A stretch of DNA of 64,000 bases from Magallana gigas (taxonomy: Eukaryota), in assembly GCF_963853765.1 (NCBI RefSeq), contig NC_088855.1:38254001-38318000 (forward strand), read 5' to 3'. The notes under the pieces were generated by a model, which did not search any database, was not told where the DNA came from, and worked only from the letters and a program-made list of their open reading frames with translations. A program made the translations under genes and the position numbers. Position 1 is the first letter of the stretch. The number at the start of each line of letters is the position of its first letter. Below are positions 3,533 through 45,676 of this stretch, piece after piece.

Positions 3533-4951
3533 ATGGTATACACTTTTTTCACTAATGGGAATATAGGACCGTTTCTCATGGCATCTAGCTTACTTGGAGG
3601 ATTCTTTGCTCCGATTATATCGTACAATGAATTTAAGGAAGCCAAAATAACTGTTGGATACATTTGCCTTGTTGTAGAGTTGATGGCATCTGCCGCTATA
3701 GCGTATGCTTGCTTTGGTATTTACAAAGACAGGGATAACTGGATTAAAGAAAAGCGACGATCAACTGTGATATTAATCAAAATCATTGTACTTTGGATTT
3801 TAGGAATCCTCCAATGCCTGTTGTACGTTATTTATGGTATATTGCATATGCACTGTGGTGGTAAAATGTATTTACTTCTATCCCAAAAAGGAGGGACATA
3901 TTGCATTGTATATATAGCGTATACGTTTTTGCAAATGATATTTATTACGTTTTGCAATCGTTATATCTTTTTTGATGTTTGGAAAATTAGATATGTCATT
4001 TCACTTTTGACAATCTCAAATATGGTCAAATGGTTAGAAGCCAATGTATTCAGTATCTTTGTCAAAACAAGATCGGACATTTCGGAATATTATGACGTCA
4101 TGCAAAATTGCTCGTACATCAGAGACAACCAATTGGATAATATATTCCAAATTACAGATATGCTTCTACCGCCATTTCTAATGGAATTTAGTATTCTTGC
4201 AGCTTCGCTTATCATCGGATTGTCTCTTTCAAAAGAACCAACAAACTCAATGGAAATAAAACAAATCGAATATGTTGGTGACATTGCAGGGGGTCAGTTA
4301 AATGTAACACCCTTTCCCCCGAGGATCAAACTAATTACGACAGTTGTAGCAGTCACTTTGAATGTTCCCTTTTTGTTTTATGGCATCACGTTTGCCGTAA
4401 ATATAAAACTCTTGGAAGACTTCATTCATCCGTGGATAATTTCTATTCTTGTAGCAAAAGTCATTGTATTTCTACTCATTCTTGGCGCTTTCTACATGTT
4501 AAATAAACGACTGAATATCCATATTGAAAATCGCCGTCTCAACTGTAATGGCGTGGCTCTTATCCTGTGTTCCTCTGCAGTGAGTTTAACCGGTGTCGTC
4601 AACAGCCTGTTTCCAATGGGGAAAAACCTGACTCTAATAACTTTTCACACCTGGTTTAATGTCTTTTACATCATATACCAGACTATTTTCATCCTATTTG
4701 GGACATCAGTAGTCTTTAGAAGAGGCGACCACAGAGTGATGTTGGCTTTTAGAGCTATTTTGATCATTCTAATCAGCTATAACCTTTTATATTGGATGAA
4801 AGATTCTCTGTTCTTCCAGCGGTCAATAGAAAATGATACAAGAGATAACTTTATAAGACTCCAATTTTTTGTTTTATATCCTTTTTTATCATTTTACAGA
4901 TTCCAGTCTGCAATGGAATTAATACCAGTTTACTGCAAAGTATGTGTTTAG
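3533..4951 (+). CDS. OTOP-like: Otopetrin-family proton-channel-like multi-pass membrane protein, copy A (472 aa, single coding exon, only uninterrupted copy)
   Basis: Many hydrophobic segments in two halves. Otopetrin-like motifs: TFLQMIFI, TISNMVKWL, PPFLMEFSILAASL, IYQTIFI, SYNLLYWMKD and C-terminal YPFLSFYRFQS (family consensus P..xFYR[FM]HS). The true start may lie slightly upstream. Confidence 0.85.
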   Translation: MVYTFFTNGNIGPFLMASSLLGGFFAPIISYNEFKEAKITVGYICLVVELMASAAIAYACFGIYKDRDNWIKEKRRSTVILIKIIVLWILGILQCLLYVIYGILHMHCGGKMYLLLSQKGGTYCIVYIAYTFLQMIFITFCNRYIFFDVWKIRYVISLLTISNMVKWLEANVFSIFVKTRSDISEYYDVMQNCSYIRDNQLDNIFQITDMLLPPFLMEFSILAASLIIGLSLSKEPTNSMEIKQIEYVGDIAGGQLNVTPFPPRIKLITTVVAVTLNVPFLFYGITFAVNIKLLEDFIHPWIISILVAKVIVFLLILGAFYMLNKRLNIHIENRRLNCNGVALILCSSAVSLTGVVNSLFPMGKNLTLITFHTWFNVFYIIYQTIFILFGTSVVFRRGDHRVMLAFRAILIILISYNLLYWMKDSLFFQRSIENDTRDNFIRLQFFVLYPFLSFYRFQSAMELIPVYCKVCV

Positions 4952-4952
4952 C

Positions 4953-4958
<6 letters not shown>

Positions 4959-5042
<84 letters not shown>
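4959..5042. repeat. (AG)42 microsatellite just after the OtopA stop
   Basis: Perfect dinucleotide run. Confidence 0.98.
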
Positions 5043-5045
<3 letters not shown>

Positions 5046-41960: not shown

Positions 41961-42533
41961 TGGTATTTATCTGGATGTTCGAATCGCCTAGATAGAATTC
42001 ATTGTGATAGAAGTCTTGTCTGAAATGCAGATACATGTATCTAATATCACTCGAGTTGACAGGAACTATAATCACTGACTGCTTCAAAAGCATCATACTT
42101 GTGATTTTACAGTTTGTCTTTTTTCAGTATGTTGCGCGTTATACGTTTACGACCAAACCCATCATTAAATATATTTTCTCTGTTATTGCCATCGCAAATT
42201 TTATGGATTTTTTCATAGTGCTTACTTTAAGTGTCAACGAAAACAAAGATCTCATCTTCGACAGAAACAAGACAGATATAGAAAACTATTAGTATACCAG
42301 ATCATCATCATCTTATTCGGGAGATGAGTGGACCTCATTGGCAATGAAATCTCCGCTGTACACTTGATTCAGGAACTTGTGCTTATCCTTAGTTGCCAGA
42401 ACATAGCAGGATTGTTCAATGATTTTCTTTACGGCGTTTAGGACATGTCCAATGACCATATACTTCGGTATAGTGATACAATAGGTTTCAGTTGGCTATG
42501 GAGCTTATGGAGTTGTACAGCCATGTGTCTTGA
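41961..42533 (+). pseudogene. OTOP-like: Otopetrin-like copy D (degenerate relic)
   Basis: Starts mid-gene (LVFIWMF-like); large internal deletion after TDIEN; stops and indels; ends ...MELMELYSHVS*. Confidence 0.85.
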
Positions 42534-42944
42534 TATACAATTATGCAATTGCTTTTAATTAAAGTTAATGAGTAAAAATTAAATATGTGATTGCGAATGA
42601 ACAATGATAGAGTCTCATTAAAGTCCTACTATTTATATTGAATGTTGACTAAACCAAATAAAAATATATATACGATAAAGAATGTTAAAACGATCAAACG
42701 TCGAATACTAAAAAGGCAGATGGACAAACATAAAACAGTATTGTCCCAATTTTTCAGTGTATCACATATACACATGTGAATTAAATGTCTCGTAATGTAA
42801 TTTTTAGTAATACAGAAAACACGGAAATTTTTGATTTGGTTAAGTTGGATGTTTCTTTAAATAAATACACTTAGATAGGAAGGGGGTTTGATAACATCTA
42901 AGATAAACAGATTAACAGGTGTGAATATAAGACCTCCGATAGAC

Positions 42945-43895
42945 ATGGCCCCTATAAACCCATCAATACTTGCAATATGCTTTGGACTCTGTTCAGTACG
43001 TAATATTTTGTGTCATTAATGTATTTACATCTAATTTCAGGTTGCATGACGTTGTAATTACAAGATATTTCAGGTATGACCACTGGTATACATAACTGTT
43101 CGATCTACCTGTACATCGGACATTAATATTTAACGTATATATTCTGAACTTTCATTGATAATGATAATTGGAAGACAAGAAACAAGATGTATATTGAGCT
43201 GTATTAATATATTCATTTTAACGCATAAAAATATATATTTATAATAATATTTGCGGCATGGTCTTGTGAATACTGAAACATGCTCTGATTCTACTTTTTA
43301 AAAACCATGGCTACAGACATTTGTGATCAAGGACACGGTTGAACCTCGAATGTGTAACCTAGCAACTGACTGCCAGGATAACGAATGCTGTGTTTCTAAC
43401 GTCCGACCGATCGGGAAAAGGCAGACGAGTTTCCATGGTCACTGCATTCCATTAGGAAAAGTCGGGGACGGTATTTGAAGAATATTTAGATTTATTTCGG
43501 TTTAACCGAGTATCACGTGCATGGTTCTATGACCTTCTGAATAATACTGGCAAACAATGACTATAATAGTGAAATTTTCTTTGGAAAATAGACAGATGTA
43601 AAGGCTATTTCTGTTACATACTGAATAACGTGCTGTTTTGCAGGATGTCTTGTGAGGAATGGTAACGCGACCTCCAGACCCACTGAGCTGGTGTTTGCAT
43701 GTCCCTGTACACCGGGTCTATATTGTCATGGAGACCACCACTATGACATACCCTTGGGAGAAATTGGTATCGTATTCTCTTTTGAATTTAATTGAATACA
43801 ATTTTTTTTCTGATTTTTAACTTTACAACAGTTACTATACCTTATCTCAATTTCACATGTTTCTTTTTTATTTAGGTCATTGTGCAAATCCATAG
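42945..43895 (+). CDS. Prokineticin/colipase-fold secreted 10-Cys peptide P6, 115 aa, intact
   Basis: Exons 42945-42995, 43317-43470, 43644-43766 and 43876-43895. MAPINPSILAICFGLCSTFVIKDTVEPRMCNLATDCQDNECCVSNVRPIGKRQTSFHGHCIPLGKVGDGCLVRNGNATSRPTELVFACPCTPGLYCHGDHHYDIPLGEIGHCANP. Exon 1 is the least certain. Confidence 0.8.
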
Positions 43896-44691
43896 ATTAT
43901 GGCTCTGACCCAAGATCCCGGCGTATTTATTATTCCGCAAAATGATATTATTGTTGAAAACAAATACAAATATAAATTAAAAATGGATGACAAGGAAGAG
44001 AAAAGTGCAAAAACTATTTTTCTTTATAAAGAGCTAATGTATGGGTTATGTGTTATTACATAATCCGTACACGATATTTGATATGTACGATCTCCTGACA
44101 ATAGCTTCTATTATTTGCTTAGCTGTAAGCACAAGGTTTACAAATACGAAATATATATACATTACTTTACCAAAAAATAACGAGAGCCTCGGTTACTGCC
44201 TACTCCATGCATTGTTTTGAAAAGATGAACGTATTAAACATATGGTATGATTCGGTGAAATTCAAAACTATAAAATAAAATACTAGTAAGCAAGAAGCAA
44301 AGTGCAGAAAATTTGGAGTAAAAAACCATAATATAGGTAGCCGGAATGGACATGCAGATTCTCTAAACTCATAATTTATAAATTTCCCCAAACTTTGAAG
44401 ACAATTCGTTGTCTAAAAAGTTGGGTTTTTTTTGAAATTCCGAGAATAGTTCGATTTTGTCAGAACAGATCGGCAAAGCGATGTTTTACTGCAAACGAAG
44501 GGAAACTTCTGTCATTTTTTTAGAATTGTCTAATCGTAAAAACAGGATTTTGAAACGAAAAAGAATGTTCAGTTAGAGATCTCCCCTTTCTTCGTCCTTA
44601 CATGGTTTTCATGATAACATTATACACTAAACATGGTATGATAAGGAGTGGTTACAATAAGGCTGAACTAGTTCTAGACCATATTGCCATA

Positions 44692-45676
44692 ATGACGCTG
44701 ACACGCGCTCTCTGGATTTTGTTAGTATGTTATCACGGAGCTGTGCTTTATGTGAGTAACTTTTTACATTTCGACAATGTGGTCCATCGAACGTAAAATA
44801 ACACATACAAAATGTTTCATTGATGAAAACATATTTCCTCATTACTCTTAATTTTCTCTTTCAAAATGTTAAAAAAACATTCTTCCTCGTTTTCCTCATT
44901 AAGACTGATGCAGCAGCGACAAATAAAGGTTGCAACTCGGCAACGGAATGTCTAGACAATGAGTGCTGTGTTTCCATTAACCAACCCATTGGGAGAAGGC
45001 AGCTTCACGGCCATTACAGTGGGCACTGTGTACCCATGGGTATGGACGGGGACGGTAAGTAAAGATTAAGGCTGGATCTCTCTGTATGTTTGCTTTTTTA
45101 GACCAAGGTCTTGTTTCCCTAATGAATTAAGAGAAGTGTTGCTATATAATTTTTTTTCGTTTTCAATTCATTTCCTCTTCCTGAATTAAAAACTAATTTA
45201 AAAGTGCATATAATGCTAAGTGATCGTGCATCACAGTCATCACCATTGTCTGAAAAAATAATGATTTACAAGTCCAGGAAGTAAATAAGAAATTGTGGAA
45301 AGTGTTTAGATCTGGTATTACATGTCCCATAACCAGTTCGAATTATTCGTCGTACAGGTTGTCTAGTCAGAACAGGAAATGCCACTACCCGCCCCCTTGA
45401 CGTGGTGTTATCCTGCCCCTGTACCCCCGGGCTCTACTGCCACGGTGATCATCTTTACGTCGTACCCATGGGAGAGCAAGGTTCTTCAAAATTTGACAGG
45501 GTTAAATAATTAATAAATTTTTTATCGATTTTGAAAAAGGTCTTGAAATAATATTGAACCTTTATCAAATTAATTGACGGAAATCGGAAGATGTAGATAT
45601 TTTTTTTTTTTTATTTTGATAAAAATAATGAATGTTAAATTTTGCGTGTATTGTAGGTCACTGTACCAGTCCTTGA
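44692..45676 (+). CDS. Prokineticin/colipase-fold secreted 10-Cys peptide P7, 117 aa, intact
   Basis: Exons 44692-44751, 44904-45054, 45358-45480 and 45657-45676. MTLTRALWILLVCYHGAVLYTDAAATNKGCNSATECLDNECCVSINQPIGRRQLHGHYSGHCVPMGMDGDGCLVRTGNATTRPLDVVLSCPCTPGLYCHGDHLYVVPMGEQGHCTSP. Confidence 0.88.

Follow-up and report, generated by a model that had tools for sequence, protein, structure and literature searches.

Divergent otopetrin-like genes and prokineticin-like peptide genes form old pairs in a duplicated gene cluster of oysters

Introduction

Otopetrins are, to our knowledge, one of only two known families of proton-selective channels in eukaryotes. Here we analyse a stretch of 64,000 nucleotides (nt) from the oyster Magallana gigas (contig NC_088855.1, positions 38,254,001 to 38,318,000), in which genes for proteins resembling otopetrins (vertebrate OTOP1-3 and Caenorhabditis elegans OTOP8; PF03189) alternate with genes for small, putatively secreted peptides resembling prokineticins, Bv8, MIT1 and the astakines (PF06607, with the Cragi-prokineticins and CgAstakine). 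This whole stretch, which has 32% G+C and zero N, is called the window below, and the two kinds of gene are called Otop-like genes and peptide genes.

In otopetrins, a Glu in transmembrane helix 6 (TM6; E250 of mOTOP2, one turn after P246) and a His in TM12 (H551 of mOTOP2, H567 of CeOTOP8) form a conserved bridge in the proton path, and the activity of XtOTOP3 is abolished by Glu-to-Gln mutation and by His-to-Ala or His-to-Gln mutation (PMC11343839). In the other family, the N-terminal hexapeptide AVITGA is required for vertebrate prokineticins to bind their receptor, astakines are likewise without AVITGA, and no orthologue of the prokineticin receptor is known from protostomes (PMC8398477).

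As an arrangement of two genes, the oyster locus resembles conjoined (read-through) and dicistronic animal genes. Its same-strand spacers measure ~0.14-0.43 kb, a spliced, polyadenylated RNA contig spans an upstream open reading frame (ORF) together with downstream exons, including a junction between exon 3 of one peptide gene (P6) and exon 2 of the next (P7), and an older M. gigas gene model, K1RJZ2, fuses P6 to P7. The oyster case differs from those units in that its evidence comes from a single contig of a related species. Small cysteine-rich modulators of channels also exist, for example the Ly6-type proteins that act on nicotinic receptors or Shaker channels. Here the likeness is one of concept only, a small disulfide-rich protein with a multi-pass membrane protein: the Ly6 fold differs from that of the oyster peptides, and the oyster pairing is one of genes. 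We know of no genomic pairing in the Ly6-type systems.

Parts of the present picture are already known: the individual genes are publicly annotated, the peptide family has been described in oysters, and tandem segmental arrays are ordinary. In the literature that we searched, the oyster clade as proteins of otopetrin fold and its loss of relay residues appear undescribed, as do the sub-kilobase pairing with prokineticin-like genes and the RNA across a pair. That search returned no paper mentioning both families, which we count among the points that weaken the interpretation given in an earlier note on this DNA, made from the sequence alone, that the peptides could be co-expressed modulators or partners of the channels.

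Results

Two old gene pairs underlie the array

We found seven otopetrin-like copies in the window (A, B, C, A', B', C' and D), located by tblastn with the 472-amino-acid (aa) OtopA ORF and with intact orthologues, and eight copies of the peptide gene (P1, P3, a relic, P2, P5, a second relic, P6 and P7), located by a scan for cysteine-rich exons together with tblastn. All lie on the plus strand. These searches confirmed the numbers, strand and order that the earlier note had given, and its bounds proved exact: the OtopA ATG stands at position 3533, and the P7 stop codon ends at position 45676.

The array was built by nested segmental duplications. Block 1 (A-P1-B-P3-relic-C; 3561..24611) is 88-90% identical to block 2 (A'-P2-B'-P5-relic-C'; 24981..41589). 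When the window was compared with itself, OtopB and OtopC were 82-84% identical inside each block, and the B+P3 region was 78-79% identical to the D+P6 region. An independent assembly of Magallana (Crassostrea) angulata, whose chromosome CM046781.1 matches the window with ~98% identity along a stretch longer than 10 kb (22.68-22.70 Mb, locus L008), includes the right part of block 2, and P5, the relic, C', D, P6 and P7 are arranged there as they are in the window. Since the copies descend from nested duplications, the repeated alternations cannot be counted as independent associations. They reduce to two independent pairs: an A-type Otop-like gene followed by a P1/P2-type peptide gene, and a B/C-type Otop-like gene followed by a P3/P5/P6-type peptide gene. 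The earlier note's idea of a recurrent, older Otop-plus-peptide unit thus holds in a reduced form: the pairing predates the array, and it comes down to two old pairs.

Both pairs are present in Crassostrea virginica. There, the order at the locus (L007) is an A-like gene (1173-2588 in the gene-order comparison, 1173-2615 for the gene with its one in-frame stop), a P2-like gene (2753-6114), a C-like gene (8133-9566, an intact 478-aa ORF), a P6-like gene (10001-11558) and then a GH1 gene on the minus strand. The distance from Otop stop to peptide start is ~140 bp in the A-P2 pair and ~435 bp in the C-P6 pair; in the window, the spacers B-P3, B'-P5 and D-P6 measure 404-424 bp. Between C. virginica and the window, synonymous sites are saturated (dS > 1). 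In this C. virginica assembly the A-like gene is interrupted and the C-like gene intact; the window shows the opposite, an intact A beside damaged B/C copies.

Ostrea edulis shows a looser linkage. On its chromosome OX387704.1, two near-identical P6-like genes lie at 77.650 and 77.667 Mb, the second of them followed after 5.7 kb by a C-like gene of 458 aa; a further three Otop-like genes, including an A-like one, are found at 77.572-77.593 Mb, ~75-95 kb away. The O. edulis cluster as a whole (L004-L006, 77.57-77.68 Mb) spans at least 100 kb; besides two peptide genes it comprises at least four Otop-like genes, which fall into three clades. The same chromosome also carries LOC130053848 and LOC125680346, two additional otopetrin-like genes that are Pfam-positive. 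Several metagenome and Logan contigs (L001, L002 and L009-L012) also carry Otop-like tandems and are too short to test for linkage to peptide genes. Together, these results indicate that the Otop-peptide linkage is conserved, tightly in Crassostreinae and more loosely in Ostrea. The microsynteny comparison proposed in the earlier note therefore came out in favour of linkage, with the same alternating order and short spacers in C. virginica and linked genes in O. edulis.

One RNA contig spans an Otop-like gene and its downstream peptide genes

A Logan contig from a related Magallana species (SRR22371049_55193, here L013; 2750 nt, 88-97% identical) covers one such pair. It reads through an intact B/C-type Otop ORF to its stop codon, continues for 413 nt colinear with the genomic spacer, and enters P6 exon 1. 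From there, P6 exons 2-3 and then P7 exons 2-4 with the 3' untranslated region (UTR) follow, joined exactly at the predicted splice sites, and the contig ends with AATAAA followed by a 25-nt poly(A) run. The matching spacer in the window, between D and P6 (42538..42944, plus strand), is 407 bp long and AT-rich, contains several AATAAA or ATTAAA hexamers, and is fully covered by L013. Since L013 is spliced at the predicted sites and carries poly(A), it represents processed RNA, and its coverage is unbroken between the Otop ORF and the peptide genes. It provides the first direct evidence of shared Otop-peptide transcription, in the form of one short-read contig from a related species, and lends direct support to the co-expression that the earlier note had raised. 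We consider shared transcription of the two genes likely. Two further Logan contigs, of 2695 and 2746 nt, encode full P7-type proteins (P0214 and P0215) and may be additional long transcripts across the unit.

The membrane proteins have a predicted otopetrin fold

Direct sequence searches did not identify the Otop-like proteins. Among all large ORFs compared with Pfam, none matched Otopetrin. Neither OtopA nor OtopC gave a Pfam match even at E <= 10, so that the PF03189 gathering score was not reached, and the same was true of Pfam searches with the close relatives P0012, P0014 and P0019; a search of PDB sequences with the family profile returned nothing relevant. Because these searches were empty, homology was established through a fold search and by chaining through intermediates.

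The AlphaFold2 model of an Otop-like protein, built with 12 relatives, has 12 long helices, a mean predicted local distance difference test score (pLDDT) of 73 and a predicted TM-score (pTM) of 0.76. When this model was compared with the PDB by Foldseek, the 12 significant matches were all OTOP1/2/3 or CeOTOP8 structures (chicken and Xenopus OTOP3, zebrafish OTOP1, mouse OTOP2 and C. elegans OTOP8), with E-values from 3e-7 to 4e-4 and TM-scores of up to 0.73. The next match fell sharply, to E 0.03 and a TM-score of 0.16. The model is thus predicted to adopt the twelve-helix, two-barrel fold of otopetrins.

The chain of intermediates points the same way. A family-profile search of 1.84 billion representatives matched 130 proteins, the closest of which are Pfam-negative; all seven full-length matches tested at E 1e-23 to 1e-9 (7/7) pass the Pfam Otopetrin threshold. 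In hhalign, the window family aligned with a profile of 15 Pfam-positive intermediates over 464 columns, with 99.95% probability and E 1.5e-38, and the 15-intermediate profile in turn matches OTOP1/2/3 PDB chains at E 1e-20 to 1e-24. Identity to the solved OTOPs is ~12-16%. The named members of the family, from O. edulis, Saccostrea, C. virginica and the ark clam Tegillarca, are all labelled 'uncharacterized protein'.

From these results, we take the membrane proteins to be a divergent, intronless, oyster-centred clade within a bivalve otopetrin-like expansion, as judged from remote homology. They share with described otopetrins the 12 long helices, the predicted fold, homology through bivalve intermediates, a conserved TM12 Pro-x3-Phe-Tyr-Arg-Phe motif and, in the A clade, the TM6 Pro-x3-Glu motif; they differ in that the genes are intronless and have no direct Pfam or PDB sequence match. 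The otopetrin identity assigned in the earlier note is accordingly upheld by Foldseek and hhalign at the level of remote homology, and not by any direct Pfam match.

Glutamine replaces the TM12 relay histidine and, in one clade, the TM6 glutamate

We mapped the TM12 His column with the A4 profile against 8ug6_A and with hhalign. The mOTOP2 residues P246/E250 and H551 align to the Pro-x3-Glu and Phe-Tyr-Arg-Phe-His motifs of the intermediate profile, and in hhalign the motifs of the window family fall on these same columns. We found that the TM12 His column holds Gln in all 12 aligned family members (12/12), and wherever the TM12 motif could be located among P0001-P0021 it also has Gln. Among remoter invertebrate relatives, His is the commonest residue at this column (37), accompanied by many others. 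At TM6, the A clade keeps Pro-x3-Glu (P214/E218 in OtopA), with Glu in 11 of the 12 aligned sequences, and the B/C clade has Gln at the Glu position, both in window C and in its intact orthologues from C. virginica and O. edulis. We discarded a tentative match between the TM9 Asp (mOTOP2 D369) and an Asn of OtopA, because it depended too strongly on the alignment.

The oyster proteins therefore differ from described otopetrins in carrying Gln in place of the TM12 proton-acceptor His and, in the B/C clade, also in place of the TM6 Glu. With the relay residues replaced in this way, it is doubtful that these proteins can be named proton-selective channels, as the earlier note had named them. They appear to keep the otopetrin fold but not the Glu/His relay, and canonical proton conduction is probably absent.

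The peptides resemble prokineticins and astakines

P2, P6 and P7 have complete four-exon GT-AG models with a common plan: exon 1 is short and hydrophobic, exon 2 contains Cys 1-5, exon 3 contains Cys 6-9, and the very small exon 4 supplies Cys 10 and the stop codon. On inspection of the models, the first exons of the peptide genes may encode signal peptides. In the mature part, the three models show the ten-Cys order with a CC doublet and a C-x-C pair. In alignment A3, nine of the ten Cys columns are conserved at 90% or more; the tenth lies in the short last exon and is missing from fragment or truncated rows. Several proteins confirm the models. The Logan protein P0198 corresponds exactly to spliced P7, preceded by a translated 5' leader; the 117-aa architecture of P7 recurs in M. 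angulata XP_052713373 and in M. gigas A0A8W8K6A4; and P6 differs at 3 of 115 residues from M. gigas A0A8W8K8W0 (115 aa), which UniProt names 'Prokineticin domain-containing protein', its name for the M. gigas orthologues. NCBI at one time named the C. virginica orthologue 'venom protein 164-like'.

Database, Pfam and structure tests of the peptides used single exons or the confirming proteins P0198, P0203 and P0212, and the joined models were used only for tblastn and for dN/dS, the ratio of nonsynonymous to synonymous substitution rates. The PF06607 gathering score of 21.6 bits was reached neither by P0198 (13.2) nor by P0212 (15.4, first member). When full-length orthologues were compared with the Pfam Prokineticin model, 9 of 11 matched at E <= 1, the best at 9e-4, all below threshold; single exons gave only weak matches to Colipase_C and MIT_LIKE_ACTX (MIT-like atracotoxin). 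The best PDB matches of the peptide profile were Bv8, colipases, MIT-like theraphotoxin, Dkk2 and MIT1; each has the colipase fold, no match reached significance, and the profile aligns with Bv8 cysteine for cysteine. The AlphaFold2 model of the peptide (pLDDT 49) was too poor to use; its top Foldseek matches, MIT-like theraphotoxin, Dkk2 and Dkk1, are in line with a colipase-type fold, had E >= 0.46 and were not significant.

At the level of remote homology, then, the peptides can be classed as of prokineticin/astakine type. They resemble Bv8, MIT1 and the astakines in a first exon that may encode a signal peptide, in the order and spacing classes of the ten cysteines and in having Bv8, colipase, MIT-like toxins and Dkk as their best Pfam and PDB matches, and differ in falling under the Pfam cut-off. 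Neither the P2, P6 and P7 models nor their orthologues contain AVITGA; in this they differ from vertebrate prokineticins and agree with astakines. Of the colipase/prokineticin identity proposed in the earlier note, the ten-Cys pattern, the UniProt name and the restriction of all matches to that fold speak in favour, and the sub-threshold Pfam and PDB scores do not.

Both gene types are under purifying selection. For the Otop-like proteins, dN/dS is 0.21 for A (OtopA against its L009 orthologue) and 0.07 for the C clade, from which we infer that they are functional in some way; across the peptides it ranges from 0.03 to 0.14, with values of 0.09 for P2 and 0.034 for P6, each against the C. virginica orthologue.

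Complementary decay left few intact copies

Only OtopA, P2, P6 and P7 are intact in the window; the remaining copies are pseudogenes or fragments left by the nested segmental duplications. OtopA (3533..4951, plus strand, as are all copies below) is an intact, intronless ORF of 472 aa and the largest ORF; an exact database look-up of it returned no record, as did that of the O. edulis isoform X2 (isoform X1 gave one), and no alternative signal-peptide exon was found just downstream of it in the window. OtopA' (24989..25315) is an N-terminal fragment corresponding to about residues 13-121 and is 90% identical to A. OtopB (15192..16634; tblastn match 15264-16628) is a pseudogene of the B/C clade, in one frame with four in-frame stops. 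OtopC (20764..22120; tblastn match 20894-22114), of the same clade, has a 406-aa ORF at 20900-22120 that is separated from its N-terminal part by one frame change. OtopB' (32682..34150; tblastn match 32778-34144), again B/C clade, consists of two ORFs split by a single 1-bp homopolymer difference, and this frame change may mark a pseudogene or an assembly error. OtopD (41960..42537), directly upstream of P6, is a fragment made of an internal piece and the 3' end, with stops.

OtopC' (37601..39027; tblastn match 37694-39021), also of the B/C clade, is broken by one 22-bp deletion. Its M. angulata copy is 99.8% identical, intact and annotated; as the two differ by this one deletion at such high identity, we take the break to reflect either a true null allele or a difference between haplotypes. 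The NCBI model of M. angulata C' (505 aa; L008:1690-4335) begins at the P2-type relic, ~1.2 kb upstream of the Otop ORF, which suggests an upstream exon or start site inside that relic.

Among the peptide genes, P2 (28294..31318; exons 28294-28341, 28768-28912, 31032-31154 and 31302-31318) encodes 110 aa with ten Cys in the mature part, P6 (42945..43895; exons 42945-42995, 43317-43470, 43644-43766 and 43876-43895) encodes 115 aa with ten Cys, and P7 (44692..45676; exons 44692-44751, 44904-45054, 45358-45480 and 45657-45676) encodes 117 aa with ten Cys. P1 (10853..13012) is a disrupted P2-type copy with recognisable exons 1-3, a premature stop and no clear last exon, and was treated as a pseudogene. 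P3 (17059..17879), a disrupted P6-type copy, begins with exon 1 ~0.42 kb past the OtopB stop and has a frame disruption, a stop and lost cysteines. P5 (34555..35487), also P6-type, retains recognisable exons 1, 3 and 4 and has a frame-disrupted exon 2; it too was treated as a pseudogene. The first relic (18747..19652), upstream of OtopC, is a degenerate third exon of P1/P2-type, and the second (36300..36621), upstream of OtopC', comprises degenerate exons 3 and 4 of the same type.

The edges and spacers of the array contain further elements. A tandem repeat with a 162-bp unit occupies the left edge of the window (35-942). In a related Magallana species (L009), another intact Otop-like gene, of 461 aa, ends ~2.7 kb upstream of the OtopA orthologue; as no trace of it was found within the first 3.5 kb of the window, the cluster probably continues leftward beyond an insertion. 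Microsatellites of (AG)n lie just 3' of OtopA (42 units, 4959-5042) and ~0.2 kb 3' of OtopC (30 units, 22353-22413). A 170-aa ORF on the minus strand (9351-9863), in the 5.9-kb interval between OtopA and P1, has no Pfam match and is probably not a gene. A 126-aa ORF in block 2 between A' and P2 (26377-26757, plus strand) matches Pfam RVT_1 at E 8e-12 and is a reverse transcriptase fragment of a retrotransposon. To the right of the array lie two divergent GH1 genes of multi-domain lactase/beta-glucosidase type, at 46734-52863 (minus strand) and 54722-64000 (plus strand); the M. angulata products at these loci are 965 aa and 2993 aa long, and the first GH1 gene is also the right neighbour in C. 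virginica.

Discussion

We propose, with a probability of roughly 0.6, that the locus is an oyster-lineage cluster of two old two-gene units, in which shared regulation or read-through couples an Otop-like gene to the peptide gene downstream of it. This proposal builds on the gene order, the duplication and decay, the purifying selection on both gene types and the one continuous RNA contig, all of which the data show. The old unit would consist of an intronless gene for a divergent otopetrin-like protein with 12 transmembrane helices, followed on the same strand by a four-exon gene for a secreted ten-Cys peptide. The ancestral, single-copy order was presumably that seen in C. virginica (OtopA, P2-type, OtopB/C, P6-type, GH1), and the two ancestral pairs may themselves have arisen by duplication of one Otop-plus-peptide unit. 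In Magallana, nested segmental duplications would then have multiplied the units and added P7, and complementary decay would have left about one working copy of each gene: A in block 1, P2 and possibly one B/C-type gene (in some haplotypes) in block 2, and P6 together with P7 at the right end. The short same-strand spacing would place the peptide gene within the transcription unit or regulatory domain of the Otop-like gene upstream of it, and a read-through, spliced and polyadenylated RNA covering the Otop ORF, the spacer and the peptide exons would lead to joint expression. A probable site of expression is the digestive gland or the larva, from which prokineticin-like transcripts of oysters are on record. 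Remnants of Otop-like genes, such as D for P6, may still carry regulatory sequence of the peptide gene.

Several observations weigh against this coupling, and many of them favour a neutral alternative in which two unrelated small gene families once became neighbours and were duplicated together in tandem and in segments, slow rearrangement across a few kilobases having kept their order and the read-through being ordinary noise of transcription between tightly packed genes on one strand. Every extra copy in the window stems from the block duplications. In M. angulata and C. virginica, the GH1 gene beside the array is no less syntenic than the pairs, so that conserved order alone is weak evidence of function. 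O. edulis has its linked genes in the order peptide then Otop, unlike C. virginica, and Otop-like arrays without peptide exons occur both there (a 21-kb view of the three additional Otop-like genes) and in Saccostrea (a 21-kb view with two Otop-like copies). Within the window, no intact Otop-like gene directly precedes an intact peptide gene, and OtopA lies 5.9 kb from P1, across an interval that starts with the (AG)42 microsatellite. The gene complement of Magallana equals that of C. virginica plus P7, which suggests that each gene is needed; in the same genome, complementary loss has parted the surviving intact partners, and close adjacency in cis is therefore not obligatory.

The transcript evidence is subject to similar reservations. 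L013 is a single short-read contig from a related species, and a de Bruijn assembler would also merge two mRNAs with overlapping UTRs. Its junction of P6 exon 3 to P7 exon 2 shifts the frame, so that the P6 ORF ends one codon past exon 3, without the tenth Cys; the molecule looks conjoined and may be a non-productive by-product. Separate Otop mRNAs are also likely to exist, since the spacers hold several poly(A) hexamers. Finally, P2, P6 and P7 could not be placed among the published Cragi-prokineticin-1 to -5, a 9-letter motif giving zero matches. Even so, we regard neutral hitchhiking as the unlikely, if far from negligible, explanation. Both old pairs have kept their orientation and sub-kilobase spacing in C. 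virginica despite dS > 1, and RNA is continuous across the spacer. Moreover, two Otop clades each precede a peptide gene of a different clade, which suggests that the two-gene unit itself was duplicated and kept.

A more specific possibility is that the peptide acts as an extracellular ligand or modulator of the neighbouring Otop-like protein, the two genes being kept together for balanced co-expression. The conserved pairing, the purifying selection on both partners and the shared RNA of L013 are compatible with such a partnership, and the lack of a known prokineticin-receptor orthologue in protostomes leaves the receptor of the peptides open (PMC8398477). We nevertheless consider it improbable. 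It is pure inference; the surviving peptide genes and the surviving Otop copies sit in different blocks of the duplication; P7 came into being with no Otop-like gene as partner; and arrays of Otop-like genes exist that are free of peptide genes. The missing relay His also leaves the modulation of proton currents without a clear substrate, and the peptide structure model is too poor to inform the question. We give a similarly small chance to the bolder version in which the two genes form a co-transcribed cassette and the peptide is the cognate partner of a relay-less receptor of otopetrin fold, or of a channel with different gating or selectivity. That the tandem blocks are an assembly artefact, with haplotigs of a heterozygous genome misplaced in tandem, is largely refuted and very improbable. 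Oyster genomes are highly polymorphic, and the homopolymer frame change in B' is typical of long-read assemblies; the blocks, however, are only 78-90% identical and carry different insertions and different disabled genes, and the M. angulata assembly has P5, the relic, C', D, P6 and P7 in order at 98% identity.

The locus bears on both families. Bivalves hold large, unannotated expansions of otopetrins, all labelled 'uncharacterized protein', and the oyster clade, in which the fold is kept and the relay residues are replaced, offers a natural test of the proposed relay mechanism. Only a few hundred bases separate each old Otop member from the gene coupled to it, which encodes a putatively secreted peptide of prokineticin/astakine type. 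If the two prove uncoupled in regulation and function, the locus is still a clean example of duplication and complementary gene loss in a polymorphic genome. Should the coupling be one of regulation or function, it would indicate where a receptor for the prokineticin-like peptides of protostomes might be sought; and were the peptides indeed cognate partners of these proteins, the locus would supply a receptor class for protostome prokineticin/astakine-type peptides and a non-proton function for the otopetrin fold.

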